64,000 bases of DNA from IMGVR_UViG_3300043464_001630:124001-188000; one strand, 5' to 3'; counted from the stretch's first letter, positions 297-56,865 are shown. The notes: generated by a model from the sequence alone, not told the origin. Numbers and translations: made by a program.

Positions 297-1241
297 TTAA
301 AAATTTTGTCCACCAATAAACCCGTACCAATCAGATCCTACTTTTGTAAAAGCAAATACATCAGTTTTTCCAGTAGTTGTATTCACTACGGGAATCACTC
401 CATTAGCCCATTTTACACTAATTCCTGCTATTGTAAAATTAACAGTAAATGTGCCTGTTTGGGTGATGAACATGGTAATACTGAAAGAATCGGTAGGAAT
501 AGTTCCAGCTAAAGTGAAACCTGTGATATTTCCTGTTAAATTAATAGGAAAAGTGTTTCCATTATCTAAATTAAGAGATACCGATCCAGTACCAGTAACG
601 AAACTAGACTTTTCCGAAAATCCTTTCAATACCAAAGATCCTGTCATTTCTCCACCACTGAGCGGAAGAAACTTACCGAATGGATTAAACTTATCTACGT
701 ATTGCTTTGGTGCTGCATGTAAATTTTGAGTTGGATCTGCTGCTAGTACCAATGATCCAGTCATGGTGTCTCCGGATTTTAAAATGTAATTAGCAGTGCT
801 TGGAATCGGAATAGCAGAAATTTTACTATTTAATGTTTTTAAATTAACAGCATCATAATCTAAAATTGGATCTTTTACATTAACGATAAAATTGTTATGT
901 ACATCGACTTTTTGATTAAAGTGCGCTTCTCCAAATGCAGATAAAGTAGCATTAACCGATAAAGTTCCGTTCATCCTCTCTGTTGGAGCGAACGTCAAAC
1001 CATTTTTATCTAATTTATTCGCAATAGACTGAGAAATTGTATTTAGATTTGTTTGTAAATTATCTATTTGAGTTTGTACTGACGTATTAACTTCTGTTTT
1101 TATTTTAGAAGTTAAATTATCAAAAGAAACTTTTTTCGTAAAATATCCTCCAGTTGCGGGATCTGCTATATCAAACGCAGTAAAATCAGTACCCTTTACC
1201 GTGGTACTTTCTGCTAGTTTATTAATGAAAGAATCAGCCAT
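297..1241 (-). CDS. Virion fibre/appendage protein
   Basis: N-terminal coiled coil; fibre motifs DAVNLKTL, YILKSGDTMTG, HAAPKQYVD, FLPLSGGEMTG; beta-rich C-terminal domain; TAAATA-N5-ATG. Confidence 0.65.
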   Translation of the reverse strand: MADSFINKLAESTTVKGTDFTAFDIADPATGGYFTKKVSFDNLTSKIKTEVNTSVQTQIDNLQTNLNTISQSIANKLDKNGLTFAPTERMNGTLSVNATLSAFGEAHFNQKVDVHNNFIVNVKDPILDYDAVNLKTLNSKISAIPIPSTANYILKSGDTMTGSLVLAADPTQNLHAAPKQYVDKFNPFGKFLPLSGGEMTGSLVLKGFSEKSSFVTGTGSVSLNLDNGNTFPINLTGNITGFTLAGTIPTDSFSITMFITQTGTFTVNFTIAGISVKWANGVIPVVNTTTGKTDVFAFTKVGSDWYGFIGGQNF

Positions 1242-1253
1242 ACATCTATTTAG

Positions 1254-1964
1254 TTATTTTGATTTGTGCATCAGTGATCCCACACTAGTCGGATCTGGAT
1301 TTCCTATATCAATATGTCCACTCAATGGCGATTGAATAATATAGAATGTTTCGATTTTTGTTTCGATTTCTGGTCTTGGTCTGAAAATAGTAGTCGGAAC
1401 TGCTGTGTTTCCTTGTATGTGTATGTCTTTTATATTAAAAATACATTTTTGTTCACCTGAATTAAGAGGAGAAGAATATCCAAATCCTATTCTGTAAAAA
1501 TCAGTATCACTAGCAGAGATTCCGGTATTAATAGAAGCTAATTTGACGTATCTATTCGTTTCTTTATTTTTCGCTGCTATTTTCAAAGTCTGAGCACAAT
1601 TTGTAAAATTAAAACGAATAGTATCAAATTCGTTGTTAGGTTTTATCAACGAAGACAACATCGGAAAAAGTGCAAAAGAAGTGATAGTAGTAAATGACGT
1701 TCCTCTTTTTATAGTTAATGTGTCGTTGCTGTCTATCATTACACCTAAAACTGCTCCGGTCACTCCTGATCTACTTTGATATGGTGCGAATCCAAGTCCT
1801 TCGTATGTACCCCCTCCTACTAACGTGGGATTGTTAAATAAAAAAGTAGAAAATCCTCCGGTGGAATTTGTTGATCCTGATAAATTATATCCAAATGACC
1901 ATGTAATGTCAAAATTGGCATTGAATGCGCTATTGATAAAAAAATTGCAAGAAGATTCTGACAT
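1254..1964 (-). CDS. Hypothetical beta-rich (possibly lectin-like) late protein
   Basis: 236-aa ORF, TAAATA-N6-ATG, beta-strand pattern; fold is a guess. Confidence 0.45.
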   Translation of the reverse strand: MSESSCNFFINSAFNANFDITWSFGYNLSGSTNSTGGFSTFLFNNPTLVGGGTYEGLGFAPYQSRSGVTGAVLGVMIDSNDTLTIKRGTSFTTITSFALFPMLSSLIKPNNEFDTIRFNFTNCAQTLKIAAKNKETNRYVKLASINTGISASDTDFYRIGFGYSSPLNSGEQKCIFNIKDIHIQGNTAVPTTIFRPRPEIETKIETFYIIQSPLSGHIDIGNPDPTSVGSLMHKSK

Positions 1965-1998
1965 CCTAATTATTTAGACTATATAACTAAATAATTGA

Positions 1999-3897
1999 AT
2001 GGCCGGTAATGCAAGATTTCATGACAAACATCATAGGACAAATCATCACACACTGTCTACAGCAGGTATTCCTGACAGTGCTACTGATCCTATCGCATCT
2101 CCTTCGCAGCCATTCCAAGGAGATTTCGTAGTTAATGGACTTTTAAGTTCTAGTAAAGGATTAGATGTTTTATCGGCAAATTACGGAGGAGATGTACATT
2201 GTGAAAATATATATGTAAGAAATACTACTTATACTAATTTCATTTCTGGAGAAGGAACCGAAACTATTATCAGTGACGGAGCATTAACGGGATATGGAGC
2301 AAATACATTAACTTTAGATTTCGGAACTGCTATTTATGCCAAAACTCCGATAGTTAATTTTACGAATTCAATTTCAGCCGCTAGTGCGATATACACAAGT
2401 TTCGCAAAATTTGTTTCACTTTCTACTACTAACTTATCATCAGATAATGTAATAATGAACAGTTTATCTTCTCTTTCATTATCTGCAAGTTCTATAACTT
2501 CGAATAGTCTATCTGCCAGAACATTATCTAGCGAAAGTATAATTTCAAATAATTTATCTAGTCAAAATATATCAGCAACTGATGTTACAGTATCAAACAA
2601 TGTAACCATTAGTGGAAATTGTTTGATATATGGAAATTTATCTGCACTAGGAGATTTGACAGAGATTGAAACTATTTTACAAACTTCTAGTGCCTTTGAG
2701 ATAACAAATACCGATACCACAAGACCCGCATTAACAATAACTCAAAGCGGAACTGCGGAAGCAATAGTGGTAAACTATGATACTGTTTCTAATTATTTAA
2801 AAGTAGACATAGAAGGATTAACAATTAATGGAAAAATTTCGGGATTATCTGGTGTATATTCTCCAAATATAAACACAATAACAAATACAGCTAATTCTGT
2901 ATATACTACGGTTTCTACTAATTCTGCTAATTGGAACACTACATACAACACAGTTTCTTCGACTAGTGCAAATTGGGTAAGTACTAATAGCGCAGTTTTT
3001 AGTAACAGTGCTAATTGGAATTCCGTATATACTACGGTTTCTAGCAATAGTTCTAATTGGATATCTGTTTATTCTAGTGTTTCTAGTAATAGTGGTAATT
3101 GGAATTCTGCATATAATACTATTTTAAATGATAAGCCCATTTGGGATGAAACTTCTTCTATTGTTTATTTTAATTCTGCATATTGGGATTCTGATTACAA
3201 TACAGTTTCTTTTAATTCTGGAAATTGGGATACTACATATAGTACAGTTTCTAGTAACAGCGCCAAATGGGAATCTGATCATTCTACTGTTTCAAGTAAT
3301 TCTGCATATTGGCAAAATACATTCTCCACTGTTAGCGGATCATCTGCTAATTGGGAGTCTACTTATTCAGATGTAAGTTCTAATAGTGCTAACTGGGAAT
3401 CTACATATTCCACTGTTTCGAGTAATTCTGCAAATTGGGAAAATACAAAAACCACAGTAAATTCTAATTCTGCTAATTGGTTAAGCGGAAGTAATACGTT
3501 ATATTTTACTGCCAGTTCTATTACAACTGATTCTTTATCAGCAAATGTTCTATCAGCAAATATCATTCGTTTATATCAAGCAATTCATGTTTCGGTTTCT
3601 GCTGTAACTGTAGCGCCGGGAACGACCACAACAATGACTATTAATTCTCCTTCTTATTATTTTGTTACTGTAACAGGTGCAGGAACTGCTAATTTTAACT
3701 TACCACCAACTAATGGAAACAATAGAGGAATGATGTTTTATATTAAAAATGTAAGTACTACTAATAGTAATCGTCAAGTTAGCGTTAATAATTCAGCAGG
3801 AACTCCACTAACTAATGGAGTATTAGCAGGAAATGGAGGACATTATATCGAAGTTGTTTGGGATGGAGCAGCTTGGCAAGAAATTTCACACGTTTAA
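1999..3897 (+). CDS. Ser/Thr/Asn-rich fibre protein with 14-aa Trp repeats
   Basis: 632 aa; His-rich N-terminus; LSA-type short repeats; 14 SANW-type repeats; TAAATA-N5-ATG. Confidence 0.65.
   Translation: MAGNARFHDKHHRTNHHTLSTAGIPDSATDPIASPSQPFQGDFVVNGLLSSSKGLDVLSANYGGDVHCENIYVRNTTYTNFISGEGTETIISDGALTGYGANTLTLDFGTAIYAKTPIVNFTNSISAASAIYTSFAKFVSLSTTNLSSDNVIMNSLSSLSLSASSITSNSLSARTLSSESIISNNLSSQNISATDVTVSNNVTISGNCLIYGNLSALGDLTEIETILQTSSAFEITNTDTTRPALTITQSGTAEAIVVNYDTVSNYLKVDIEGLTINGKISGLSGVYSPNINTITNTANSVYTTVSTNSANWNTTYNTVSSTSANWVSTNSAVFSNSANWNSVYTTVSSNSSNWISVYSSVSSNSGNWNSAYNTILNDKPIWDETSSIVYFNSAYWDSDYNTVSFNSGNWDTTYSTVSSNSAKWESDHSTVSSNSAYWQNTFSTVSGSSANWESTYSDVSSNSANWESTYSTVSSNSANWENTKTTVNSNSANWLSGSNTLYFTASSITTDSLSANVLSANIIRLYQAIHVSVSAVTVAPGTTTTMTINSPSYYFVTVTGAGTANFNLPPTNGNNRGMMFYIKNVSTTNSNRQVSVNNSAGTPLTNGVLAGNGGHYIEVVWDGAAWQEISHV
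2893..3480 (+). repeat. 42-bp (14-aa) tandem coding repeat, 14 copies, consensus SANWxSTYSTVSSN
   Basis: Trp codons at 2932 and 3478 are 13x42 nt apart with a Trp every 14 residues between. Confidence 0.9.
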
Positions 3898-5774: not shown

Positions 5775-6095
5775 TTAAGAAATTTTATTAACTACAAATC
5801 CAGTAGGAAGTTTTTGTAGAGTGAATGGACGTTTACCTAATTGTTTCGGTGTATTTAATTCTTCCGCATTTAATTCGTGTTTACTAATCAAATCAAAAGC
5901 TTCGGCATTTGAAATTGCTCCAGTTTTTTGCGATTTGTTTTGATTATAATTAGCATCATTTTTACTGTATCTTTTTGCTACCATGTTAACTCCTGTATTT
6001 TTACCATCTCTAGGAGCGCCAGTTCTAAAAAAACGCGAATTTCTCATGTGATGAGGATTTACGTGTTCATAAAAGTATTCTTCGAAAGATACCAT
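5775..6095 (-). CDS. Small late protein, possible internal head protein
   Basis: MVSFEEYFYE start resembles T4 capsid-targeting sequences; TAAATA-N6-ATG. Confidence 0.45.
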   Translation of the reverse strand: MVSFEEYFYEHVNPHHMRNSRFFRTGAPRDGKNTGVNMVAKRYSKNDANYNQNKSQKTGAISNAEAFDLISKHELNAEELNTPKQLGKRPFTLQKLPTGFVVNKIS

Positions 6096-6110
6096 GTTAA
6101 TTATTTAGCA

Positions 6111-6166: not shown

Positions 6167-6784
6167 TTAACCGAAAATAGAATCACCCTTACCGTTTGGA
6201 TTATACTTAGGATTGTTTACCTTGATAGAACCACCGGGCTTGGCTTGATCAACTTTCTTAGTGAAAGGCATGTAATGTTCAGTGCCTTGAGTTTGTGAGG
6301 TCTTTTCAGCCTTACCATGAGCACTTGTCTTATTTGCTACTGCACCTTCTACACGAGAATTGGACATCTTTTGAAGCTTTTCTGCCTTTGACTTTGTTTC
6401 GAAGGGTTCGTACTTAGACTGAGGAGCTTCGTGCATTGTTTCTTCTTCTTCCTCTTCTTCAGCAGCTTCGTCGCCTTCTTCTTCGTCAGAATCTTCAGCA
6501 GCTTCGTCTCCCATATCTTCTCCACCTTCTTCACCCATTTCTCCGCCTTCTTCTTCGGTTTCTTCTCCACCACCAAGAATACCGCCTAGTAGATCATGAA
6601 GCTTTTGTGCAGTTTCGCGATCTAAAGTAAGAGTGACTTCATCGCCACCTTCTTCAGAACCGAAATCTTCACCACCCATTTCACCAGCACCTTCTGAACC
6701 TTCGCCAGAAGGTAGACCTAGTGCTTCTGCGTCATCTTGCATTACTTCTTCGAATAGCTTTTCAAATAGAGATTTATTGCTCAT
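6167..6784 (-). CDS. Highly acidic low-complexity protein, possible prohead core/internal protein
   Basis: Glu/Gly-rich middle, basic C-terminus; TAAATA-N5-ATG. Confidence 0.5.
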   Translation of the reverse strand: MSNKSLFEKLFEEVMQDDAEALGLPSGEGSEGAGEMGGEDFGSEEGGDEVTLTLDRETAQKLHDLLGGILGGGEETEEEGGEMGEEGGEDMGDEAAEDSDEEEGDEAAEEEEEEETMHEAPQSKYEPFETKSKAEKLQKMSNSRVEGAVANKTSAHGKAEKTSQTQGTEHYMPFTKKVDQAKPGGSIKVNNPKYNPNGKGDSIFG

Positions 6785-6855
6785 ATTTCTATTTACTCTC
6801 GTACATAATATTTTTTATAGCTTTTTTTAATTTTTTTACATTTTTTATATTTTGG

Positions 6856-6861
6856 TAAATA
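6856..6861 (+). promoter_or_regulatory. T4-like late promoter core TAAATA for terL
   Basis: 5 nt before ATG 6867, which favours 6867 over the TTG at 6852 as the start. Confidence 0.7.
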
Positions 6862-6866
6862 ACGAC

Positions 6867-7241
6867 ATGCCTAGAAAACCAAAAAAAGACATATACATGA
6901 ACAATCCAGCCCTACCAACAGTAGAGGCTCAATTCGAATGGACACCACAAATGGTGGCGGAATTAAAGAAGTGTAAAGAAAATATATTACATTTCGCGGA
7001 AAACCATTTTTATATTATTTCACTAGACGAAGGTAAACAAAAAATAACACTACATCCATATCAAAAGAGGGCATTAAGGATGATTAGGGACAATCGAAAT
7101 TCCATCATGTTGTTTAGTCGTCAAACTGGAAAATGCCTTGACGCCAACAACTTATGTAAGATTCGTGATAAAAAAACTGGTGAAATACAGGAACTTACGA
7201 TAAAAAAGATTTTTGATATTTCTGCTCTTGAAAAAGAGTGA
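6867..7241 (+). CDS. terL: Terminase large subunit, N-terminal fragment fused to split-intein IntN
   Basis: T4 gp17-like YMNNPAL, ELKKCKENILHFAENHFYIISLDEG, LHPYQ; Walker A SRQTGK followed directly by intein block A CLDANN. Confidence 0.92.
   Translation: MPRKPKKDIYMNNPALPTVEAQFEWTPQMVAELKKCKENILHFAENHFYIISLDEGKQKITLHPYQKRALRMIRDNRNSIMLFSRQTGKCLDANNLCKIRDKKTGEIQELTIKKIFDISALEKE
7134..7238 (+). mobile_element. Split intein N-fragment (IntN, 35 aa)
   Basis: CLDANNLCKIRDKKTGEIQELTIKKIFDISALEKE then stop; starts with Cys right after the Walker A Lys. Confidence 0.88.
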
Positions 7242-8893: not shown

Positions 8894-11128
8894 AGTACGT
8901 TGGCTACTATTTTTATGCTTTGGGTGGCTATTTTTAATGATGACCAAAGAATATTATTAGTAGCAAACAAAGAAAGTACTGCAAAAGAAATCTTTAGAAG
9001 AATTCGAGTCGCCTACGAAGGATTACCAAACTGGCTAAAAGCACCAGTTACTTATTATGGTCTAGAATCTCTCGAATTACAGAACGGATCTCGTATAAGT
9101 ATAACAACAACAACGGGAACCGCAGGTCGTGGTAGTAGTGCGAATCTGTTGTTTGTGGATGAAATGGACTTTATCGAATGCGTAGAAGGGTCAACTACAA
9201 TAAAATTAAAAAACGTAACAACGGGAAAAATAGAAGAAATGTCTATTAAAGACATGCATGATAATAGTAAACATCTATTAAATTTCGATAATTTTCAAAT
9301 ATTATCAGACGATGGCTGGAAATCATTCAAAGGAATAGTAAAGAACGAGAATATTAGATCTGTTAAATTACTATTTGATGATAATACAGAATTAATATGT
9401 AGCGAAGATCATGAGTTATTATCGGATTCTGGAGAATTCATTTTAGCAAAAAAATCAGAAAACACAAAACTAATTTCTGATAAAGGATTTAAATTTGTAA
9501 AGACTGTTTCGGAAAATGGAAAGATAGATGCGTATGATGTTACCGAAGTAGAAGGTAGTAGATATTACACAAATGGGGTGATATCGCACAATTGTAACAT
9601 GCTGTCTGAGTTTTGGTCTTCTGTGTATCCGATTATTTCTTCTTCTAAAAAATCTAAAATCATTGTGGCATCTACTCCAAAAGATACATCAGGTTTATTG
9701 TACAAGCTTTATGATGGTTCAGTAAAAGGAACAAACAACTGGGCACATATGAAAGTACTGTGGAGTGATGTGCCGGGAAGAGATGAAAAATGGAAGAACG
9801 AAACCATATCAGCTCTTGGAGATGTTGGCACTTTCAGGAGAGAATTTGAGTGTGTGACAGGTGAAACTCTCGTCACCATATTAAACAATAACGAGACTAG
9901 TTCAATTACCATCGAAGAATTGTACAAATTAAATAAAAACGGTATAAAAGTTCTAACTCCTTCTGGATTCAAAAATTTCGATGGTATTCAAAAATTAAAA
10001 AAAGAATGCTTAGAATTAGTTCTTAAAACTACATCATTAAAATGTAGCACAAATCACAAAATTTTGACAAAAGGTGGGGATTTCAAATTTTCAAATGAAT
10101 TAACTGTTGGTGAATTCATAAAAACATCTAACGGATATGATGAAATTGTAAAAATACAAGATTCCGGAGTTTTAGATGTATATGATTTGTTGAATGTAGA
10201 AACAAAACAATATTACACTAATGATATTGTATCACATAATTGCACTTTCGATGAGGTAGGCGAATCCGCAATTGATGAAGGTTTATTCGATGATATGCGA
10301 AAATATACAATGGAGCCTATGTATATTTTTGAAAATGGCTGTTATCTTCTCTGGGAGAAACCAAATCCCGACAGACTTTATGTTGCTGGAGTGGATATTG
10401 CAGAAGGAGTCGGAAAAGATGCTACTGTTATTCAGGTATTAGACATTACAGAACCAACAAGAATAAAACAAGTAGCAATTTATCATAACAATAAAATATC
10501 TCCGTCTGAATTCACACCAAAATTACGAGAAATCTTACAACATTGGGGTGATCCATTAGCAATGATCGAGCGTAATGGTTGTGGTGCGCAAGTTGTTGAT
10601 AACTTAAAAAGAGAATTTAGTTATGATAATATAGTAAACTGGGGAATTAATAAAGTCGCGAACAAAAAATCCATGCAACATGGACTAGTTTCGCATACGA
10701 ACACAAAATATACTGGTGTTATGAACCAGAGATATTGGGTGAATACCATGCGTTGCGTACAGATTAATGATATTAATACGGTATTAGACATGAAAGATTT
10801 TATTAGAACTAAATCTGGACATTGGAGTGCTAAAAACGGAGCGAACGATGACAGAGTGATGGCATTGGTATGGGCTCTTATGATTTTACACGAAGATATT
10901 GCTCCGGTCTATTTCGATATCATAGATAAAGACGAATTCGGAAAACCAAAAGTCATAAAATCTGTGGATTATGGAATAAGATATTTCTCTAATCCAACAT
11001 CTATATACACAAATGAAAAAGACGGAATAGGAGGAGATGCCATGCCAATGGTTTTTGGTGGAGATAATTCAGACAACACAGACTTGGACGATCTGATGAA
11101 TCAAGGATGGAAACCATTAAATTATTAA
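8543..11128 (+). CDS. terL: Terminase large subunit, C-terminal fragment: IntC plus exteins with two cis mini-inteins
   Basis: IntC ends ILSHN/S; gp17 motifs LVANKESTAKEI, Walker B LFVDE, ASTP, nuclease GVDIAEGVGKD, IERN, NDDRVMAL. Confidence 0.93.
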   Translation: METKKFIESRKVEDYEIWTDEGWADIQEVHKTIKFDVWTVETENFEIQCADEHIVIGENREEIYVKDLKIGDKIITENGPESVIRVEKLDVEPEHMYDLSIDSENHTFFSNGILSHNSTLATIFMLWVAIFNDDQRILLVANKESTAKEIFRRIRVAYEGLPNWLKAPVTYYGLESLELQNGSRISITTTTGTAGRGSSANLLFVDEMDFIECVEGSTTIKLKNVTTGKIEEMSIKDMHDNSKHLLNFDNFQILSDDGWKSFKGIVKNENIRSVKLLFDDNTELICSEDHELLSDSGEFILAKKSENTKLISDKGFKFVKTVSENGKIDAYDVTEVEGSRYYTNGVISHNCNMLSEFWSSVYPIISSSKKSKIIVASTPKDTSGLLYKLYDGSVKGTNNWAHMKVLWSDVPGRDEKWKNETISALGDVGTFRREFECVTGETLVTILNNNETSSITIEELYKLNKNGIKVLTPSGFKNFDGIQKLKKECLELVLKTTSLKCSTNHKILTKGGDFKFSNELTVGEFIKTSNGYDEIVKIQDSGVLDVYDLLNVETKQYYTNDIVSHNCTFDEVGESAIDEGLFDDMRKYTMEPMYIFENGCYLLWEKPNPDRLYVAGVDIAEGVGKDATVIQVLDITEPTRIKQVAIYHNNKISPSEFTPKLREILQHWGDPLAMIERNGCGAQVVDNLKREFSYDNIVNWGINKVANKKSMQHGLVSHTNTKYTGVMNQRYWVNTMRCVQINDINTVLDMKDFIRTKSGHWSAKNGANDDRVMALVWALMILHEDIAPVYFDIIDKDEFGKPKVIKSVDYGIRYFSNPTSIYTNEKDGIGGDAMPMVFGGDNSDNTDLDDLMNQGWKPLNY
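9179..9592 (+). mobile_element. Cis mini-intein (138 aa) just after Walker B
   Basis: DEMDFIE/CVEGST...CSEDH...AYDVTEV...TNGVISHN/C; no endonuclease domain. Confidence 0.92.
9851..10240 (+). mobile_element. Cis mini-intein (130 aa) at the FRREFE/C motif
   Basis: CVTGET...CSTNH...VYDLLNV...TNDIVSHN/C. Confidence 0.92.
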
Positions 11129-11136
11129 ATAGTTAA

Positions 11137-11712
11137 ATGGGAAATGCATTTGATCAGTCATTATTAAACAAATCTAGGAAAGATAAGTTTGTATTGACTA
11201 TTTTTCTTCCAGAAGCAATTAGAGATTTAAATTCCAAAGAAGATAGAAAAAATTCCAAATTAAATCTAGAGAGTCTTCAAATGTCTATCTACGGAACCGT
11301 TGTTCCAAGAAACGTTATACCACAAGAAGAAGTCAGATATGCAGGAAGTACTGTATATGTTTCGTCACACAATAAACCTTCGTATGATCCAGTAAGTGTA
11401 AATTTCACGATAGATAACGAATTTAAAAATTATTGGGTAATACACAGATGGCTAGAACTGTTAAGAACAGAACGTGGTGGATATTATGAACACCCAGAAG
11501 AATTCAAAAATGTAGGATTAGGACAATATTCCACAGATTTCGTAGTCACCGCAAAAGACGAATATCACAACGATGTTATACAATGGACATATAAATCAGC
11601 TTTTCCGATTTCTTTAGGAGAGATTAATTATAGTTACAGAGATGGAGGAGAAATCGAAACTTCTTTCGAATTTGTATTTAGAAGAATCGAGACAATTTTG
11701 CTACCCTTGTAA
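11137..11712 (+). CDS. Tail tube terminator/completion protein (T4 gp3-like)
   Basis: Tube-fold motifs YDPVSVNFTIDNEFKNYWVIHRW, AFPISLGEI; next to sheath gene. Confidence 0.7.
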   Translation: MGNAFDQSLLNKSRKDKFVLTIFLPEAIRDLNSKEDRKNSKLNLESLQMSIYGTVVPRNVIPQEEVRYAGSTVYVSSHNKPSYDPVSVNFTIDNEFKNYWVIHRWLELLRTERGGYYEHPEEFKNVGLGQYSTDFVVTAKDEYHNDVIQWTYKSAFPISLGEINYSYRDGGEIETSFEFVFRRIETILLPL

Positions 11713-44393: not shown

Positions 44394-44447
44394 TTTTTGT
44401 CTGTGTATTATTAGCAAGCAATCGGATACTAAAACTAAATATTACCA

Positions 44448-45197
44448 GTGATCGATCAAAGAATAGGTAAAATAAAAGTTCGTAGAGGAACTGAACTCCA
44501 AAGAGTAGAAAATACCTTTGAAGAAGGCGAAGTTATTTATTCTGTTGATAAAAAGAGAATTTTCGTTGGTGATGACACTACATTAGGCGGTGTTCCTGTT
44601 TGTAATCGTAATTATATAGTAGATTCTTTGGGATTTCCACCAACATTACCTGACGATGTATTAGACGGTGATATCATACACGATAAATTAAGTTCTACAA
44701 CTTATATAACTAGATGGACTGGAACTGACTATGAGTTACTATTAATAGCGGATGGCAATTGTTGTGTTCAATTAAAAAATCAAATAGATGACTTATATAC
44801 AAAATTAAGAACATTAACAGGTTGTTTAGAAGAACCGCCACTACCTCCATCACCACCTTCTAAATTAACTTGGGTAATACAACCAACAGATAAATTTGCT
44901 AATATTGGAGACACAGTGACATTCACTGCGAGTGCTATCGGAAATGGAACTATATCTTATGTTTGGAGAAGAGTTGATGCGTTAGCGATAAATACATTAA
45001 ACATTTATAAAAATTCAATCACAATTAATAGTGCAAATATATCTGATATTGCAGATTATTATTGTGTGGCATCGAATGCAGTAGATTCTATTACAAGCAG
45101 GAATGCTGAATTAACTTTTGATTCTGATTATATATTAGCAGAAGACGGTACTTATGTATTATCAGAATTGATGGAAAATATTATTTGGGAACTTTAA
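44448..45197 (+). CDS. Mtd_N-like plus Ig domain protein, paralog 2
   Basis: KIKVRRGT..FEEGE; NCCVQL; one Ig domain; GTG start with TAAATA-N6. Confidence 0.7.
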   Translation: MIDQRIGKIKVRRGTELQRVENTFEEGEVIYSVDKKRIFVGDDTTLGGVPVCNRNYIVDSLGFPPTLPDDVLDGDIIHDKLSSTTYITRWTGTDYELLLIADGNCCVQLKNQIDDLYTKLRTLTGCLEEPPLPPSPPSKLTWVIQPTDKFANIGDTVTFTASAIGNGTISYVWRRVDALAINTLNIYKNSITINSANISDIADYYCVASNAVDSITSRNAELTFDSDYILAEDGTYVLSELMENIIWEL

Positions 45198-45207
45198 ATA
45201 AAAACAA

Positions 45208-46800
45208 ATGATTGATCGTAGAATAGGAAAAATAAAAGTTCGCAGAGGAACCGACACCCAAAGGAAATTAGTTACCTTTGAAGAAGGCGAACTTGTATAT
45301 TCTATTGACAAGCAGCGTCTTTATATCGGAAATGGAACAGAAAAAGGCGGTATTTTAGTCTCAAACAGAAATTACGTAAAAAATTCAGTAGGAGATCCAC
45401 CAGTAGTTCCGCCCGAAGCACTACACGGTGATATCGTTTATGATAAATCCAATTCGAGAACATATATCACTAAATGCGATTCATTGTCATGTGAGTTATT
45501 ATTAATTGCTGATGCTAATTGTTGTGTTCAACTTCAAAACGAAATAAGTGATTTATACGACAGACTAAGTACATTGTCCGCATGTGCATCAGCATCAATT
45601 CCAAAACCACCAAAACCAACAAAATTGACATGGTATATCCAACCATCGGATATTTCGGTTAATTTAGGCGAAACCGCTACATTTACTGCAAGTGCAATAG
45701 GAGGATTTGGTATTATATCATATAAATGGAACAGAAAAGACGGAACCACTATTTCTGTTATTGACAATCAACCAACTTTAACATTTACTACACAATTAAG
45801 TGATACTGCCACTTATTATTGTGTTGCGAATACACCAACAGAAACCATAACTAGCAGAGATGCTGTGCTAAACATAGGAGCTAATTCTATTTTAGCAGAA
45901 GATGGTACTTATATATTATCAGAATTGAGCGAATTCATTGATTGGGAAGAAAATGGACTAATAGCTCCAACAATAAAAATACAACCAAAATCTCTATCAA
46001 CAACTACATTAGTTCCAGTTACATTTGAAGTTACTGCGGCTGGTAGTGAACCTTTATCTTATCAATGGAAAATTGGGGGAGTAGATCAAATAGGAGAAAC
46101 CAATAGAACATATACAGTAACAAATCCAACAAAAGATATAACAGGAATAACTTGTGTTGTTAGTAATTTAGTAGGAAGTGTTACGAGTAATTCGGTAAAT
46201 CTCGCAGTAGGAATCAAACCAAGTGTAGTTACACAACCACTTTCACAATCGAAATCTTTCGGATCATTAGTCACATTTAGTATAATAGCTGCTGGTAGTG
46301 CGCCATTACTTTATCAATGGAGTAAAGACGGAACGGGAATTACAGGAGCTACATCAAATACTTATACTATAAATTCAGTACAAAATATTGATTTAGGAAA
46401 TTATACTTGTGTTGTGAGTAATGGATTCGGAAATGTTACGAGTAATATTGCTACTCTTGAACTTATATCTTTTACTGGATGTAATATAAATATGACCGAA
46501 TATCTGTATAGTAATGGGTGGGATGGAAATGAATCTTCTCTTAATTCATTTACTATTAATCTTACCGGAAACATTGGATGTTGTGGTGGAACAATTCCTA
46601 CATTTAATTGGGGAACATTAAATATTAATAATTTTATCACAAACATTATATATAATGACGCAAAAGGAAGATTTACATTGGGTTCTGGTGAAGTAGTACC
46701 AGCTAAACTCACTTTAAAAGCAGGAACATACTATTTACAAGGAAATATAAAGGGAGGAGTCGATGTCCAAGGAGGAACGGCAAATTTTGGAGGATGTTAA
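45208..46800 (+). CDS. Mtd_N-like plus 3 Ig domain protein, paralog 3
   Basis: KIKVRRGT..FEEGE; NCCVQL; three Ig units (YKW/YQW...C). Confidence 0.72.
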   Translation: MIDRRIGKIKVRRGTDTQRKLVTFEEGELVYSIDKQRLYIGNGTEKGGILVSNRNYVKNSVGDPPVVPPEALHGDIVYDKSNSRTYITKCDSLSCELLLIADANCCVQLQNEISDLYDRLSTLSACASASIPKPPKPTKLTWYIQPSDISVNLGETATFTASAIGGFGIISYKWNRKDGTTISVIDNQPTLTFTTQLSDTATYYCVANTPTETITSRDAVLNIGANSILAEDGTYILSELSEFIDWEENGLIAPTIKIQPKSLSTTTLVPVTFEVTAAGSEPLSYQWKIGGVDQIGETNRTYTVTNPTKDITGITCVVSNLVGSVTSNSVNLAVGIKPSVVTQPLSQSKSFGSLVTFSIIAAGSAPLLYQWSKDGTGITGATSNTYTINSVQNIDLGNYTCVVSNGFGNVTSNIATLELISFTGCNINMTEYLYSNGWDGNESSLNSFTINLTGNIGCCGGTIPTFNWGTLNINNFITNIIYNDAKGRFTLGSGEVVPAKLTLKAGTYYLQGNIKGGVDVQGGTANFGGC

Positions 46801-46807: not shown

Positions 46808-46836
46808 TTTACAATATTTTTGTTCTCTGTTATCTT
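46808..46836 (+). promoter_or_regulatory. Putative sigma70-like promoter
   Basis: TTTACA-N17-TATCTT with TGn extension, 6 nt before ATG 46843. Confidence 0.4.
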
Positions 46837-46842
46837 AGAAAG

Positions 46843-47556
46843 ATGCCTGTCATCCTTGATCACGATACTCACACATACACCAACACAGAAAATGGTGACA
46901 TTTACACTTCGGTAACCACCTTAATTAATTCTTATAAAAAGAAATTTGACAGCGACAAGTGGAGTAAACACGTAGCTAAGAGAGAGGGAAAATCTCAACA
47001 AGAAATTCTCGACAAATGGAGCGAAATTACCACAGTAGCACAAAACCGTGGTACTAATGTCCATTTGATCATGGAGAATTACATCAAATTTAATAAAATC
47101 GAAAAAGGATACGAAGAGCTGGTGAATTCATTTATTAAAAAAACCAACGGAATTTTAAAGCCTGATTCTAACGTACTCAGTGAATCTCTATTATATTCCC
47201 ACGAAGACAAATTAGCAGGAACTGCCGATCTTATTGTAGAAAATGGTGATATTTTTCATGTCATGGATTTTAAAACAAACAAGCGTTTTAACTTCGACAA
47301 CAAATATAACGAATATTTCTACGAACCAATTGATTATCTACCCCAGTGTGAATTTACGACATATACTATTCAAATGTCTATTTATGCCCACATGCACGAA
47401 CAATTAACTGGAAAGAAATGTGCAGGACTCAGAATCTTCTACCTCAGAGAATTCAGTGATAAAACTTTCTGGCAAGAGTATGCTTGTGTATACATGAAGC
47501 CAACGGTTCTAGATCTTCTAAAAGACAAAAAAATCAAAGACTCTCTTGAAAAATAA
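46843..47556 (+). CDS. PD-(D/E)XK (RecB/Cas4-like) exonuclease
   Basis: SVTT, RGTNVH, AGTADL, MDFKT, QMSIY. Confidence 0.85.
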   Translation: MPVILDHDTHTYTNTENGDIYTSVTTLINSYKKKFDSDKWSKHVAKREGKSQQEILDKWSEITTVAQNRGTNVHLIMENYIKFNKIEKGYEELVNSFIKKTNGILKPDSNVLSESLLYSHEDKLAGTADLIVENGDIFHVMDFKTNKRFNFDNKYNEYFYEPIDYLPQCEFTTYTIQMSIYAHMHEQLTGKKCAGLRIFYLREFSDKTFWQEYACVYMKPTVLDLLKDKKIKDSLEK

Positions 47557-48634: not shown

Positions 48635-48649
48635 ACTAAATACTTATAG

Positions 48650-49888
48650 ATGCCATTAATCTATAAAAGTTATAAAGTAGAATTAGACCCGACCAATGTT
48701 CAAATCACTAACATGAAAAAGAACATTGGTGCGGCTAGGTTTGCTTATAACTGGGGCTTGCGTAAGAAGATAGAGGCATACGAACAAAAAAACAAAACCC
48801 CTTATTATAATGATCTTCATAAAGAATTAAATTCTATGAAGAAAAGTGAAATTACTTGGGCGTATGAATGTTCTAAGTGTTCTTTTCAAGAAGCATTGGT
48901 AGATTTAGATAGAGCTTTTGATAATTTTTTTTCTAATTGTAAAAAAGGACTCAAAGGCAAGAAAGGGTTCCCCAAGTTCAAATCTAAAAGAAATGATAAA
49001 CAAACGTTCAGATTGTTCGGTTCGATTAGCATTAAAGAAAATGCAATCAAATTACCAAGAATCGGAAAAGTTAAATTAAAAGAAACCGATTATATTCCTA
49101 AAGATATTAGAATTAAGCAAGCCACAGTATCTAAAAAGTCTGGTAGATGGTTTGTGTCGGTTCTGACCGAAATGGAATATGACTCATTATTACAAAACAA
49201 TAAAATAGTCGGTGTTGATTTAGGTATTAAAACGCTTGCTACTTGTTCAGATGGAACAACGTTTAATAATCCTAAAGCTCTCAAAAACAATTTAAACAAT
49301 TTAAAATATCAACAAAGAAAACTTAGTAAAAAAGTTAAAAATAGTAAAAATTATGAAAAACAAAAATTAAAATTACAAAAGATACATTATAGAATCTCAA
49401 ATATTAGAAAAGACAGCTTACATAAAGCGACTTCGAAAATTATTAGCGATAACCAAGTAATAGTTTTAGAAGACTTAAAAGTTTCTAATATGATGAAGAA
49501 TCACAAATTAGCACAAGCCACTAGTGATGTTGGATATTATGAATTTCGCAGACAGATTGAATACAAAGCTAAATGGAACAACAGACAAGTTATATTCGTT
49601 GATCAATTCTTTCCATCTAGTAAATTATGTTCGTCTTGTGGTAATAAGAAAGAAGATTTAAAGTTGACAGATAGAACTTATAAATGCGATTGTGGTTTAG
49701 AAATGGATAGAGATCTTAATGCATCTAAAAACTTAGAACAATTTTATACTGGGAGTTTCTCAGGAATTAACGCTTGTGGAGATGAGAGGTTCATCAAGGA
49801 AACGAAAGTTTCTAAGAGGTGCTCGTCGGTGAAGCAAGAATCTAACAAAAAGACTAGAGAATATACCATTAAAAAGGTTAGACTTTAG
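48650..49888 (+). CDS. tnpB: RNA-guided endonuclease TnpB
   Basis: HTH YKVELDPT..ARFAYNW; RuvC GVDLG / LEDL / DRDLNAS all intact; Zn ribbon CSSC..CDC. Confidence 0.95.
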   Translation: MPLIYKSYKVELDPTNVQITNMKKNIGAARFAYNWGLRKKIEAYEQKNKTPYYNDLHKELNSMKKSEITWAYECSKCSFQEALVDLDRAFDNFFSNCKKGLKGKKGFPKFKSKRNDKQTFRLFGSISIKENAIKLPRIGKVKLKETDYIPKDIRIKQATVSKKSGRWFVSVLTEMEYDSLLQNNKIVGVDLGIKTLATCSDGTTFNNPKALKNNLNNLKYQQRKLSKKVKNSKNYEKQKLKLQKIHYRISNIRKDSLHKATSKIISDNQVIVLEDLKVSNMMKNHKLAQATSDVGYYEFRRQIEYKAKWNNRQVIFVDQFFPSSKLCSSCGNKKEDLKLTDRTYKCDCGLEMDRDLNASKNLEQFYTGSFSGINACGDERFIKETKVSKRCSSVKQESNKKTREYTIKKVRL

Positions 49889-53100: not shown

Positions 53101-54101
53101 GCACTTAATGAAATAGTAAACAATCCTTCGGTTCCTGTTAGTGCTCCTGTAAGTTCACCACCAGATAATTGCAATGCATCAGAATTAATACCAACAATAC
53201 CACTCAATCCACTTCCATCTCCATAAAAAGTTCCGCTTATATTAGGAGCACTCAATGAAACTGTAAACAAACCTTCGGTTCCTGTTAATGCTCCAGTTAA
53301 TTCTCCACCAGATAATGGCAACTTATCATTACTCGTAATAGCAATACCACTTAAATTACTTCCGTCACCATAAAATGTTCCACTTAAACTAGGAGCACTT
53401 AATGAAATAGTAAATAATCCTTCAGTTCCAGTTAATGCTCCGGTAAGTTCACCACCAGATAATGACAACTTATCATTATCAATACCAAAAATACCACTTA
53501 GTCCACTTCCATCTCCATAAAAAGTTCCGCTTATATTAGGAGCACTAAGAGATGTAGTGAATAATCCTTCTGTTCCTGTTAATCCTCCTGTTAGTACACC
53601 ACCAGCTAGTGGTAACTTATCAATATCGATACCAGAAATTCCAGACAATTTACTTCCGTCTCCGTAAAATGTTCCGCTTAAACTAGGAGCACTTAATGAA
53701 ACTGTAAATAATCCTTCGGTTCCTGTTAATGCTCCAGTTAGTTCACCGCCAGATAATGGCAATTTTGTGGTATCAGTACCGAATACTCCGGTTAAACCAC
53801 TGCCATCACCATAAAAAGTTCCACTTAAATTCGGAGCACTTAATGATATGGTAAATAATCCTTCGGTTCCTGTCAATGCTCCAGTTAATTCTCCACCAGA
53901 TAATGGTAATTTTGTAATATCCGTTCCAAATACTTGAGTTAATTGGCTACCAATTCCGATAAATTCATAAGCTGTTACATTTTGCGTAAACAATCCTTCG
54001 GTAGCTGACAAAAGATTATGAGAATAAACATTATCCCAATACGAATCTTTACCAGATGTAGTTCCTGAAATATTTTCGGAAGGTGCTAAAAAGCGAGACA
54101 T
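50124..54101 (-). CDS. Long tail fibre-like protein with 49-aa repeats
   Basis: 16 KLPLSGG..TG..GLFTxSLSAP..SG.FYGDGS repeats; start moved from TTG 54116 to ATG 54101 because of TAAATA-N5. Confidence 0.8.
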   Translation of the reverse strand: MSRFLAPSENISGTTSGKDSYWDNVYSHNLLSATEGLFTQNVTAYEFIGIGSQLTQVFGTDITKLPLSGGELTGALTGTEGLFTISLSAPNLSGTFYGDGSGLTGVFGTDTTKLPLSGGELTGALTGTEGLFTVSLSAPSLSGTFYGDGSKLSGISGIDIDKLPLAGGVLTGGLTGTEGLFTTSLSAPNISGTFYGDGSGLSGIFGIDNDKLSLSGGELTGALTGTEGLFTISLSAPSLSGTFYGDGSNLSGIAITSNDKLPLSGGELTGALTGTEGLFTVSLSAPNISGTFYGDGSGLSGIVGINSDALQLSGGELTGALTGTEGLFTISLSAPSLSGSFYGDGSGLTNLIGIDNGKLPLSGGTLTDGLTGTSGLFTISLSAPSLSGSFYGDGSRLTGVSGIDGSKLSLAGGVLTGSLTGTEGLFTTSLSAPNLSGTFYGDGSGLTNLIGIDSSKLALTGGRIDGNLIINGALTALSSATFVNTVFTTTSALSVINYGAGPALYVFQTSGAYDIASFYDQDYGEVFHIGNDGRVGVRESEPNKELTVNGEISAKHDIWADKFRGDGSLLTNIVGTDSSKLPLSGGILTGSLTGTVGLFTTSLSSASISGSFFGNGSGLTGVSGIDVSKLPLVGGNLTGSLTGTVGLFTTSLSAPNLSGSFFGDGTGLTNILATDFNKLPLSGGTLTGGVTGTSALFNNISAQSISGTFYGDVSNGTNVPHYFVTLRNPTNQAGSVVSDVFTYTNPGALAVVEGVTPSVGDIILFVSQTNQAQNGPWKVINVGGVGIQAVLERPSFYKGTVRNGTMFSVSKGTSSHGFIYACNTSTGGGTSDIVVGTTALTITQAYARGNTNAVLFANTFTSTQTLAVGSTTTAPLRFQAGTLLTTPVQNSVEWDGNFMYLTTSGANSARTTNVAFVSAPATSSSYGLAGQVAYDSTFFYVCTAPNTWVKSSITTSGIALAADPTKLPLSGGALTGTLTGTVGLFTTSLSAPNLSGVFYGNGSGLTSVSGIDGSKLPLAGGVLTGGLTGTTAIFTTSLSAPSISGIFYGDGTRVTGLTSIDISKLALSGGVLTGGLTGTVGLFTTSLSAPNLSGAFYGNGSRLTGVSGIDGSKLPLAGGVLTGGLTGTTAIFTTSLSAPSISGIFYGDGTRVTGLTSIDITKLGLSGGVLTGGLTGTTATFNTSVSSPNISGTFYGDGSNIFNITPIPAQINFIFDGGSSLVQENAFGYIQIPYNTKILSWTLLANQPTNSIVQVLTSNFASHPTYTVISGLSNQPALVNTTKASSTTMTGWVTAIPADSYLQFVVTSNDNAGSLTISLKCTRSS
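50500..53915 (-). repeat. 147-bp (49-aa) coding repeats in three blocks (8+3+5)
   Basis: Counted from the translation; 294-bp near-identical duplication (e.g. 50644 vs 50938); boundaries approximate. Confidence 0.85.
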
Positions 54102-54157
54102 AAAATTATTTATCAAATCTTAAATGATTAACTCATTTGAATTTGTGATTTTCGGAT

Positions 54158-54858: not shown

Positions 54859-55794
54859 TTATGCGAACATAACCACTTTATAATCTTGTCCAACTGTTAA
54901 GTTATTTGGAAATTGTATGGTGGTATTATTCGAATCTACATTCTTAGATGAAACAAACACTAATTCATCAGTTGTTATATCATATACACTAATAATAATG
55001 TTTTTTGTGTTTAAATTGTGATTGAGATGATAAGTTCTTGTCATATTATCACCTAATATATCAAATGTTAATTTAGAAACTAGTTCTCTTCCTTGGGTAT
55101 CTGTGATTTCGTTAGCTACAACAGTTTGTGTTACGGTAAGATTTCCGTCCATTGTACCACCATTGGCATATTGAACGGCATTTGTACCGCCACCACTTTC
55201 AGCAAAACGTAGACTTTCTCTACGAGCAATTTTTTCTGCTATTTCTATAAAACTTTTTTTGAAATTACTAGTATATGCTTCGAAAAATTTCTCTATTTTC
55301 TTGTCGCTTCTGTCGGTTAATAGTAGTTCGTGAAATAATTCTTCGGTGTTTTCTTTAATTAGTTTTTTAATTAATCCGTTTTTAGATTCTTTTTGTATTA
55401 ATTTTTTGAGTTCGGTTTTTGTTGGATTTTCCGCTGGTTTGTTTGTTGATAATTGTTCTTTAACTACTGTTCTTTTGTTAATTACTGGAGTTTTATTCTC
55501 AATGATAGCTGAATTTCTTCGGTTTAAACTATTTTGATTTATTTTAACTACGTTTTCTTTTGTTAATTGAAACTTTACATTTTTAAAAACTGTATTATTA
55601 ATTGTTACGTCTAATTCCACAACAGGAAGCCCGTTCTTTTCTTCTTTTTTCTCTTTTATTATTTGATATTGAGGGGTTTTAATTTCAAAAACATCAAAAT
55701 ACACTTCATCTATAGAATCAAATCCCAACATATTCACTCCTTCATAAGTGAATTGGCAATTATTAATCTCTTGACCTTCTAAAGATACTTTCAT
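54859..55794 (-). CDS. Hypothetical virion protein (ESGGGTNAVQYANGG family)
   Basis: Paralog of 55831..56841; TAAATA-N7-ATG. Confidence 0.6.
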   Translation of the reverse strand: MKVSLEGQEINNCQFTYEGVNMLGFDSIDEVYFDVFEIKTPQYQIIKEKKEEKNGLPVVELDVTINNTVFKNVKFQLTKENVVKINQNSLNRRNSAIIENKTPVINKRTVVKEQLSTNKPAENPTKTELKKLIQKESKNGLIKKLIKENTEELFHELLLTDRSDKKIEKFFEAYTSNFKKSFIEIAEKIARRESLRFAESGGGTNAVQYANGGTMDGNLTVTQTVVANEITDTQGRELVSKLTFDILGDNMTRTYHLNHNLNTKNIIISVYDITTDELVFVSSKNVDSNNTTIQFPNNLTVGQDYKVVMFA

Positions 55795-55830
55795 TTAAAA
55801 CTATTTAGGCAAAATAAGAGAAAAAACCAC

Positions 55831-56841
55831 TTAACAAAATAAAATTACTCTGTAATTCTCTTCTACTCGTAGATCATTTGGAAATGTTATTCGAGTATTA
55901 TTAAGATCTATATTAGTACTGGAAACAAACACCAATTGATAATTACTCATATCATAAACATTTATTAAAATGTCTCTTGTGTTGAAATCGTGAGTAAGTG
56001 TGAATGTATTATTAGAACCATTTCCCAATACATCGAAAGTTTTTTTATGAACTAATTGTCTACCTGTGGTATCTATTACAGTTTCGGCAACTATTTGATT
56101 GGTTACGGTTAAATTTCCGTTCATTGTGCCTCCGTTGGCATATTGCACGGCATTTGTACCGCCTCCACTTTCCATTGCTCTTGCAAATTGAGTATTTTTT
56201 ACTTTTTCAATAATTTGATTGAATTCTTTCTTCATTGCATCAGCATGATAGTTAAAGAATTTCTTAACTCTTGGATCGTCTTTTTTCTTTTCTAATAAAT
56301 CAAAAAATTTAGTATCTTCTTGTGTTTCTTCTGCATCTTCTTGTATTTTTTCGTTAGTAGAAGATTTAATATTATCTATATATTTTTCAGTATTTTCTTT
56401 TTCTGGAATTTCTGGTGCTTTTTGAACTTTATCAAAAACTTTAGGTGCTATACTGACTGAAGTTTCTTTGGGTTCTTCGAGATTTGTCTTTTTAACAGAA
56501 TTTGGTTTTTTACTGACTGGTAAAGATACTGGTTTTTGATAAGAAATTGATTTTTTTGGTTTATTTTGGGTGCTTGTAAAATTTTCTTCAAATTCTTCGG
56601 AAGAAATGTGATCAAGTGGAACTAATTTATTTGTGTTTTCTAAAATAATGAACTTTTTGTTATTTACTTTGATAACTTCTTTGTTTTTCCAATATCCAAT
56701 CTTTTCTGATACTAATAAATTAGATCCTTTACTAATATAATATTTTCCATCTAATAGTTTGTAACTATAACTATCATCTTTGTTTTTATTTTCTTTAAAA
56801 AGCAATGTTTTTGCTAAATGCTTTGCAAGAATGTCATCCAT
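55831..56841 (-). CDS. Hypothetical virion protein (ESGGGTNAVQYANGG family)
   Basis: Paralog of 54859..55794; TAAATA-N5-ATG. Confidence 0.6.
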   Translation of the reverse strand: MDDILAKHLAKTLLFKENKNKDDSYSYKLLDGKYYISKGSNLLVSEKIGYWKNKEVIKVNNKKFIILENTNKLVPLDHISSEEFEENFTSTQNKPKKSISYQKPVSLPVSKKPNSVKKTNLEEPKETSVSIAPKVFDKVQKAPEIPEKENTEKYIDNIKSSTNEKIQEDAEETQEDTKFFDLLEKKKDDPRVKKFFNYHADAMKKEFNQIIEKVKNTQFARAMESGGGTNAVQYANGGTMNGNLTVTNQIVAETVIDTTGRQLVHKKTFDVLGNGSNNTFTLTHDFNTRDILINVYDMSNYQLVFVSSTNIDLNNTRITFPNDLRVEENYRVILFC

Positions 56842-56865
56842 CTTAGTATTTAATAAAAATAAAAA

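Follow-up and report, generated by a model that had tools for sequence, protein, structure and literature searches.

Promoters fused to start codons in an uncultured T4-like lake phage

[quoted passage not shown] These promoters lack a -35 element and have an AT-rich spacer (PMC2988020), and the element lies 14-28 nt upstream of the start codon with a Shine-Dalgarno (SD) site in between. In the T4 gp55 open complex, the flipped adenines are at -12, -9 and -8, so the element spans -13..-6 and leaves 5 nt before +1 (PMC7892883). T4-like cyanophages (S-PM2, Syn9), which infect aquatic, SD-poor hosts, have the late promoter NATAAATA, with a relaxed 5' end and the conserved TAAATA core. It has been described only as lying upstream of late-gene homologs in positions consistent with a promoter, and no fixed spacing to the start codon was reported (PMC2984593). 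Leaderless transcription is known from Thermus phage phiYS40, a large myovirus of a thermophilic, high-GC Deinococcota host, which makes most middle and late mRNAs without leaders and is thought to tilt host initiation (IF2 up, IF3 down) towards leaderless mRNA (reviewed in PMC3594737). In Deinococcus-Thermus and Actinobacteria, cellular genomes that are mostly high-GC, a TAnnnT element whose first T lies about 12 nt before the start codon signals leaderless ('TA-led') genes, which make up 20-40% of the genes (PMC3160421, PMC12340547). In contrast, SD-independent initiation in Bacteroidota acts on leadered host transcripts (87% over 10 nt) with a diffuse A-enrichment at -14..-11 (PMC6847099). 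Here we asked how these systems compare with an uncultured 236-kb T4-like lake phage, in which TAAATA had been predicted to lie 5-7 nt before many start codons and to generate leaderless late mRNAs.

Position of TAAATA relative to start codons

We first read back the 25 predicted sites in the analysed window, a stretch of 64,000 nt (IMGVR_UViG_3300043464_001630:124001-188000). All 25 were correct: TAAATA lies 5 nt before 17 starts, 6 nt before 4 and 7 nt before 4, and four of the starts are GTG (Table 1). Two start-call corrections made in the original prediction also hold, as an ATG with the motif replaces the TTG at 6852 (start 6867) and the TTG at 54116 (start 54101). In the window, TAAATA-N5-RTG occurs 20 times, compared with 4.49 +/- 2.10 in 100 dinucleotide-preserving shuffles (maximum 11). 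Seventeen of the 20 are the predicted gene starts, whereas the other three lie antisense in large genes and open only 2-6 codons.

To examine spacing without using any start calls, we counted TAAATA-Nx-[AG]TG in the whole 236,391-bp genome. At x=5 it occurs 83 times and 69 of these open ORFs of at least 60 codons, against a background of 13.7% of all [AG]TG. The figures are 22/18 at x=6 and 14/10 at x=7, whereas at x=0-4 and 8-12 there are 4-17 occurrences with 0-6 long ORFs. In a crude set of 333 genes, 98 carry the motif at N5-7 (69/17/12). TAAATA is the most enriched hexamer in the 30 nt upstream (14-fold), whereas AGGAG occurs before 1 of 333 genes and GGAGG before 2 of 333. Together, these data show that the observed spacing is real and far beyond chance.

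Table 1. Motifs preceding start codons in the window (window coordinates)
Position	Strand	Element	Gene and context
1239..1252	-	TAAATA-N5-ATG	tail-fibre-like gene 297-1241
1962..1976	-	TAAATA-N6-ATG	gene 1254-1964; back to back with the 1988 site across a 34-nt divergent gap
1988..2001	+	TAAATA-N5-ATG	gene 1999-3897
6093..6107	-	TAAATA-N6-ATG	gene 5775-6095, followed by head-closure-like 5008-5772
6782..6795	-	TAAATA-N5-ATG	gene 6167-6784
6856..6869	+	TAAATA-N5-ATG	corrected start 6867; heads the unit that holds the large terminase 8543-11128
11126..11139	+	TAAATA-N5-ATG	gene 11137-11712; the motif's TAA is the terminase stop codon
11734..11747	+	TAAATA-N5-ATG	tail sheath 11745-14381
14471..14484	+	TAAATA-N5-ATG	tail tube 14482-15072
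15062..15077	+	TAAATA-N7-ATG	gene 15075-15794, followed by baseplate hub 15803-16678
16679..16715	+	TTGCAA-N16-TAAATT-N6-ATG	T4_baseplate-family gene 16713-17459; either sigma70-like or a one-mismatch late element
17468..17482	+	TAAATA-N6-GTG	gene 17480-19639
19645..19658	+	TAAATA-N5-ATG	gene 19656-20960
25151..25164	-	TAAATA-N5-ATG	gene 24698-25153
25175..25214	+	cTTGCT-N16-TATAGT-N7-ATG (sigma70-like)	dUTPase 25212-25670, which heads the clamp-loader unit
27140..27153	-	TAAATA-N5-ATG	gene 26585-27142; back to back with the 27164 site across a 32-nt divergent gap
27164..27177	+	TAAATA-N5-ATG	gp25-like baseplate gene 27175-27654, followed by gp6-like wedge 27657-29471
32784..32797	+	TAAATA-N5-GTG	gene 32795-35524
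35993..36006	+	TAAATA-N5-GTG	gene 36004-37974
41330..41343	+	TAAATA-N5-ATG	tail collar fibre gene 41341-42414
42886..42899	+	TAAATA-N5-ATG	tail collar fibre gene 42897-44393
44436..44450	+	TAAATA-N6-GTG	gene 44448-45197
45195..45210	+	TAAATA-N7-ATG	Ig-domain tail/decoration gene 45208-46800
46808..46845	+	TTTACA-N17-TATCTT-N6-ATG (sigma70-like)	PD-(D/E)XK-like gene 46843-47556
48637..48652	+	TAAATA-N7-ATG	TnpB-like transposase 48650-49888 (a mobile gene, not a virion gene)
54099..54112	-	TAAATA-N5-ATG	corrected start 54101 of virion structural gene 50124-54101
55792..55807	-	TAAATA-N7-ATG	gene 54859-55794
56839..56852	-	TAAATA-N5-ATG	gene 55831-56841

TAAATA as a late promoter core

As TAAATA is identical to the six 3' bases of the T4 late element, we wondered whether the phage encodes the corresponding sigma factor. 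A gp55 homolog was found elsewhere in the genome, in one 500-aa ORF at genome position 103528-105030, with phrog_234 matches at 103597-103743 and 104725-104970 (E=1.1e-5 and 1.4e-16). The exteins align with T4 gp55 and the T4 pocket residues L54, F86, Y97 and T99 are conserved, and relatives have uninterrupted copies of 151-153 aa. A clamp loader is also present (phrog_168). However, gp45 and gp33 were not found by PHROG scans of ten candidates, by Pfam profiles (DNA_PPF and gp45-slide_C) or by PDB sequence search, and one single-sequence AlphaFold model was unusable (pLDDT 38).

The motif behaves as a promoter rather than as a ribosome site. It is all-or-none, as the exact hexamer occurs at N5 in 69 genes and one-mismatch variants in only 8. 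As in T4, no -35 conservation is seen and the spacer is AT-rich, although the two bases preceding TAAATA (TA in T4) are replaced by R-H. TAAATA is depleted inside coding regions on both strands against codon shuffles, with a sense O/E of 0.55 (rank 12 of 1163 hexamers) and an antisense O/E of 0.66 (rank 57 of 1163), although the antisense depletion is moderate and rests on a codon-shuffle null. About 260 copies nonetheless remain inside genes, so the hexamer alone cannot be a sufficient promoter; extra context (R-H before the motif, A-T after it and a purine at +1) is implied but not proven.

The motif is also specific for gene class. At N5-7 it precedes 10 of 23 recognisable virion genes and 0 of 22 replication or nucleotide genes (Fisher p=5.6e-4), and most other virion genes lie just downstream in the same unit. 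Exceptions are PhoH (N6), a homing endonuclease (N7), a TnpB (N7) and RNR small subunit (N8). Of the 98 motif genes, 38 head divergent units, compared with 36 of 211 genes without a promoter signal. A generic promoter and terminator scan of window positions 1-20000 gave counts no higher than in shuffles, so operon ends could not be defined that way.

To determine whether the arrangement is conserved, we compared related contigs. TAAATA-N5-ATG before the sheath gene persists in relatives down to 45% protein identity while the flanks diverge, and the N5 peak is seen in four other contigs (10/10, 20/22, 9/9, 12/13). A more distant relative (contig L035) has TAAATA 14-24 nt upstream with AGGAG, AGGA or AAGG in between, as T4 does; in those genomes the motif cannot be the ribosome site.

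A sigma70-like promoter class and the leaderless reading

The architecture is not restricted to late genes. We found a second class, cTTGAy-N17-TAnnnT-N6-ATG, before DNA polymerase, primase, helicase, SbcD, ThyA and dUTPase, which is conserved in one relative (G005). TTGAY-N16-18-TAnnnT-N6-[AG]TG occurs 16 times and 13 of these open long ORFs, against 2-7 occurrences at other spacings, and TAnnnT peaks at N6 in the 235 non-TAAATA genes (24 against about 8). This class has exactly the layout of TA-led genes, and its sigma70 geometry again places the predicted +1 on the A of the ATG. Genes with neither signal have a median gap of 3 nt to the upstream gene, which suggests translational coupling. 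However, about 96 genes with more than 15 nt of upstream non-coding DNA show neither signal at the start.

Overall, this supports a model, inferred without RNA 5'-end data, where TAAATA is the core of the late promoter, corresponds to positions -11 to -6 of TATAAATA and is read by host RNA polymerase carrying the gp55-family sigma factor, with no need for a -35 element. In this lineage the element has been pulled against the coding sequence: with a 5-nt spacer the predicted +1 is the A (or G) of the start codon, and with 6-7 nt spacers it falls on the start codon or 1-2 nt before it. Most phage mRNAs thus probably begin at the start codon, and late mRNAs would be leaderless or nearly so and translated by direct recognition of a 5'-terminal AUG without SD pairing. 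Genes without their own promoter mostly overlap or abut the preceding gene and are probably translated by termination-reinitiation coupling. Some observations fit less well. Thirteen motif genes start with GTG, although leaderless GUG may be translated poorly in E. coli. The gene for the major capsid protein, the most abundant late protein, is an exception: it has TAAATA 40 and 65 nt upstream and a roughly 35-nt A-rich leader, so leadered, SD-free translation also works in this host.

We considered whether TAAATA might instead act in the mRNA as a non-SD initiation element, an A/U-rich ribosome or S1 binding site at fixed distance on leadered polycistronic transcripts made from promoters elsewhere, as proposed for SD-poor bacteria such as Bacteroidota. 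The genome-wide lack of SD motifs, the location of the motif in the usual RBS zone, the 14 N5 sites that overlap the upstream gene's stop codon in tight junctions and the enhancement of initiation by A-rich upstream regions in Flavobacterium (PMC6847099) would be in line with this. Nonetheless, it appears unlikely, as all 22 replication or nucleotide genes are translated without the motif, an mRNA signal would feel no selection on the antisense strand, and a strict, class-specific hexamer at -11..-6 differs from the diffuse Bacteroidota signal; non-motif genes show only flat A/T richness. The all-or-none behaviour, the encoded gp55 sigma factor and the separate SD in L035 and T4 also argue against it, and divergent pairs only 32-34 nt apart leave no room for other promoters.

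Cleavage of long precursors by an endoribonuclease just upstream of each start codon is even less likely. The motif is AU-rich, as many RNase E-type sites are, and occurs at internal junctions of co-directional gene arrays. However, processing explains neither the antisense depletion, nor the match to the gp55 promoter core and geometry, nor the parallel sigma70-like class at N6, nor motifs at the heads of divergent units, where no precursor would come from upstream. A by-product of AT-rich intergenic DNA and of TAA stop codons lying just before the next start might be expected in a genome of 33.7% G+C, in which 14 of 69 N5 sites use a TAA of the motif as the upstream stop codon. This is refuted by the shuffle and spacing controls; moreover, same-composition hexamers are not enriched, most sites are not at stop codons, and motif and spacing are conserved across divergent relatives.

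Novelty and host

We found no report of gp55-type promoters abutting start codons. If transcript 5' ends agree, this would be, as far as we could find, the first T4-superfamily phage in which the gp55 late promoter is fused to start codons, and a rare case of a virus applying the leaderless layout across temporal classes, here with at least two sigma specificities at once. It would provide a simple rule (TAAATA-N5-ATG, TAnnnT-N6-ATG) to correct start calls and find small genes in a large group of uncultured lake phages, and would warn that gene finders will mistake these promoters for ribosome-binding sites. It would also make the old idea that phages can favour their own translation through leaderless mRNA, also raised in the original prediction, testable in a new lineage. 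A more far-reaching possibility, which we consider unlikely but not excluded, is that a whole clade of uncultured T4-superfamily jumbo phages from lakes runs an entirely SD-free expression programme, with leaderless first cistrons made from at least two (perhaps three) sigma-specific promoter classes and coupled downstream cistrons. This would let the phage disable canonical leader- or 30S-dependent initiation of host mRNAs, for example by shifting initiation-factor balance or altering ribosomes, while its own messages keep being translated, a translation-level host takeover not described for T4-like phages.

The original prediction also suggested that the architecture hints at the host type, but the host could not be named. 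The TnpB-like transposase gave only uninformative hits of 35-47% in Bacillota and candidate-phyla genomes, and no tRNA, S21, WhiB or psbA genes were found. The closest cultured phages are T4-likes, at 34% identity over the sheath C-terminus only, and nucleotide search found nothing useful. If leaderless expression holds, it would narrow the host to a bacterium with classical -35/-10 promoters whose ribosomes accept leaderless and SD-free mRNAs. Although the lack of SD motifs and the A-rich capsid leader resemble Bacteroidota, the Bacteroidota promoter TAnnTTTG is not enriched in the intergenic DNA of this phage (7 against 10 expected), whereas TTGAC-N16-18-TAnnnT is 4-fold enriched there.

Genome context and enrichment of TAAATA before start codons

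The 236,391-bp IMG/VR virus contig is 33.7% G+C and is estimated by CheckV to be 100% complete. Near-identical DNA is present in lake-water and freshwater metagenomes. The gene content is that of a very distant T4-superfamily myovirus. In the window we found large terminase, sheath, tube, baseplate hub, gp25-like and gp6-like wedge proteins, tail collar fibres and a clamp loader. Elsewhere in the genome we found a major head protein, prohead protease, gp13-like adaptor, family-B DNA polymerase, primase, helicases, gp32-like SSB, UvsX, gp46/47-like SbcCD, RNR and ThyA. The nearest cultured phages are T4-likes, with 34% identity over the C-terminal 41% of the sheath. ARAGORN found no tRNA genes in the 236 kb.

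To examine whether TAAATA is positioned relative to starts, as the original prediction had claimed, we first read back all 25 sites from the sequence, and all were as predicted. In the window, TAAATA-N5-RTG occurs 20 times, compared with 4.49 +/- 2.10 in dinucleotide shuffles. Three TAAATA-N5-ATG sites lie antisense inside large structural genes and open only 2-6 codons, and are either chance copies or antisense late promoters. Genome-wide and without any gene calls, TAAATA-Nx-[AG]TG occurs 83 times at x=5, and 69 of these open ORFs of at least 60 codons, although only 13.7% of all [AG]TG triplets do so. Other spacings outside 5-7 give 4-17 occurrences with 0-6 long ORFs. In a crude set of 333 genes, 98 have the motif at N5 (69), N6 (17) or N7 (12). 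TAAATA is the most enriched hexamer in the 30 nt upstream (14-fold), whereas AGGAG is found before 1 gene in 333. The ATG starts at window positions 6867 and 54101, which the original prediction had proposed as corrected start calls, are supported over the longer TTG starts.

Locations of features discussed in the text
Feature	Coordinates	Strand
gp55-family late sigma factor gene	genome 103528-105030; locus L104:3528-5030	+
Major capsid gene	genome 69427-70983	-
Region with the third promoter-like motif	genome 22.4-45.2 kb (e.g. 29659, 31327, 31533, 32118, 32367)	+
TTGACA-N17/18-TATAAT promoter inside a coding region	window 16155-16184	-
TTGACA-N17/18-TATAAT promoter inside a coding region	window 16280-16308	+
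TTGACA-N17/18-TATAAT promoter inside a coding region	window 1884-1912	-
Antisense TAAATA-N5-ATG site	window 28251-28264	-
Antisense TAAATA-N5-ATG site	window 51643-51656	+
Antisense TAAATA-N5-ATG site	window 61066-61079	+
TnpB/IS605-type transposase gene	window 48650-49888	+
TnpB/IS605-type transposase gene	genome 10760-12355	+
TAAATA upstream of starts with AGGAG, AGGA or AAGG in between	contig L035, e.g. 2063, 7024, 7426, 9168	
Nucleotide-sugar epimerase and glycosyltransferase-type gene block	genome about 87-96 kb	-
ORF continuing past the window end	window 62378-64000	-

A late promoter or a ribosome site

We next asked whether TAAATA is a promoter or a ribosome site. Nine independent lines point to a DNA-level promoter. 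The genome encodes a gp55-family late sigma factor (phrog_234, E=1.4e-16), whose exteins align with T4 gp55 and keep L54, F86, Y97 and T99 of the base-binding pockets. This gene carries a 337-aa in-frame insertion with intein-like junctions (FINY|CVDEE ... ITGN|SYKED), which Pfam Intein_splicing matches at E=7e-6, below the curated cut-off. As two relatives, including a 242.6-kb genome with a 90%-identical sheath, have uninterrupted gp55 of 153 and 151 aa, a mobile intein appears to sit in the late sigma factor. The hexamer equals the last six bases of T4's TATAAATA and of the cyanophage NATAAATA. Nothing is conserved near -35 and the following bases are AT-rich, as described for T4 late promoters (PMC2988020). 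The motif is also all-or-none, with 69 exact copies at N5 and only 8 one-mismatch variants.

We next compared its occurrence within genes to codon shuffles. TAAATA is depleted inside coding regions on both strands, with a sense O/E of 0.55 (rank 12 of 1163 hexamers) and an antisense O/E of 0.66 (rank 57), although an mRNA signal should not be selected against on the antisense strand. Nonetheless, about 260 TAAATA copies persist inside genes, which implies, without proving it, that extra context matters: the R-H before the motif, the A-T after it and a purine at +1. The most depleted sense-strand hexamers in genes are SD-like (TAAGGA O/E 0.29, ATAAGG 0.35, AAGGGA 0.38), followed by words containing TGA or start codons followed by A. 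This may mean that the host's ribosomes do recognize SD-like sequences, or it may reflect codon-pair bias.

The motif is class-specific, as it precedes 10 of 23 recognizable virion genes and none of 22 replication or nucleotide genes (Fisher p=5.6e-4). The other virion genes mostly lie immediately downstream in the same unit, and those replication genes are evidently translated without it. In addition, 38 of 98 motif genes head divergent units. Two divergent pairs (window 1964/1999 and 27142/27175) are separated by only 34 and 32 nt, and these gaps contain little except the two back-to-back motifs. The element and its spacing are conserved before the sheath gene in 25 of the 29 related IMG/VR loci examined, down to 45% protein identity, while the flanks diverge. 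Four other contigs show the same N5 peak (10/10, 20/22, 9/9 and 12/13 sites open long ORFs), and a GC-richer sub-group has spacings of 5-8 nt. In contrast, the more distant contig L035 (IMGVR_UViG_3300033068_001057) carries TAAATA 14-24 nt before starts with AGGAG, AGGA or AAGG in between, which looks like the ancestral T4-like leadered layout. In 50 kb of T4's late region, TATAAATA lies 14-28 nt before starts (one further copy at 73 nt), with an SD in between. In those genomes, the motif clearly is not the ribosome site. Overall, the promoter identity of TAAATA is well supported.

Predicted leaderless transcripts and a second promoter class

To determine where transcription would be expected to start, we used the cryo-EM structure of the gp55 open complex, in which the flipped adenines of the element are at -12, -9 and -8 (PMC7892883). 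TATAAATA therefore spans -13 to -6 and exactly 5 nt separate it from +1. TAAATA-N5-ATG thus predicts initiation on the A of the start codon. The strongest support came from a second, unexpected signal. Among the 235 genes without TAAATA, TAnnnT peaks 6 nt before the start (24 compared with about 8 at other spacings). The composite TTGAY-N16-18-TAnnnT-N6-[AG]TG occurs 16 times and 13 of these open long ORFs, compared with 2-7 occurrences at other spacings. These canonical sigma70-type promoters precede DNA polymerase, primase, a helicase, SbcD, ThyA, dUTPase and others, and are conserved before the orthologous genes of the relative G005. As a sigma70 -10 hexamer occupies -12..-7, N6 again places +1 on the A of the ATG. 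Two unrelated promoter types, each at its own characteristic spacing, hence converge on the same predicted start point, a layout that is the accepted signature of leaderless genes in bacteria (PMC3160421; PMC12340547). Genes with neither signal have a median gap of 3 nt to the upstream gene, and 110 of 174 lie within 15 nt, which fits translational coupling on polycistronic mRNAs.

Not all genes follow this pattern. Thirteen motif genes start with GTG. The major capsid gene has TAAATA 40 and 65 nt upstream, followed by an A-rich leader without an SD (…AAAAAAGAAAGAAAACAAACACAT-ATG), and the sheath-stabilizer gene has N10 with GAGGAG. About 96 genes with more than 15 nt of upstream non-coding DNA show no recognized signal at the start. 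Moreover, gp45 and gp33 were not identified by profile searches or among the candidate ORFs examined. Leaderless transcripts, as put forward in the original prediction, are likely but unproven, as the transcription start points are inferred without RNA data. The accompanying suggestion that this biases translation toward the phage remains open.

A further motif might represent an early promoter class that also abuts start codons. It has the form A-rich-CTAAAG-N15-CCGATTA, with 12 copies, all on one strand in a region of small genes. Five copies are followed by exactly 6 nt and then ATG, and others are followed by a conserved TATA(T)ACCGGA/ACGCCA. Three perfect 12/12 TTGACA-N17/18-TATAAT promoters lie inside coding regions with no start codon behind them. 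By a rough estimate, about 0.02 would be expected by chance in 20 kb. Two of them diverge about 100 bp apart inside the baseplate hub gene, which recalls T4 oriE inside gene 5. They could be origin or primer promoters, or sources of antisense RNA.

Host signals and related systems

To investigate which type of host might read these signals, we searched for host-specific promoters and genes. As SD is absent from all gene classes, Bacteroidota appeared possible at first. However, the Bacteroidota promoter TAnnTTTG is not enriched (7 observed, 10 expected), whereas classical TTGAC-N16-18-TAnnnT is 4-fold enriched in the 7% of the genome that is intergenic, and Flavobacterium mRNAs are leadered. 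No WhiB, psbA or S21 genes were found. The host remains unknown, but should have classical -35/-10 promoters and ribosomes that accept leaderless and SD-free messages. Two TnpB/IS605-type transposase genes sit in this lytic-type phage genome. The one in the window has TAAATA at N7, and its nearest cellular homologs are only 35-47% identical (Bacillota and candidate phyla).

The closest functional precedent is Thermus phage phiYS40, whose middle and late transcripts are mostly leaderless and whose infection is reported to shift IF2/IF3 in favour of them (PMC3594737). The closest mechanistic relative is the T4 late promoter. What would be new here is the fusion of a gp55-type late promoter to start codons, and the use of the same design by at least one other promoter class, across a clade of uncultured lake phages, of which we found no description in the literature searched.

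The long minus-strand block of nucleotide-sugar epimerase and glycosyltransferase-type genes has almost no internal promoter signals. Finally, the ORF initially listed as window 62378-63865 continues past the window end. It is a 1115-aa virion protein whose start lies at genome 189725, and the ATG at 63865 is therefore internal.
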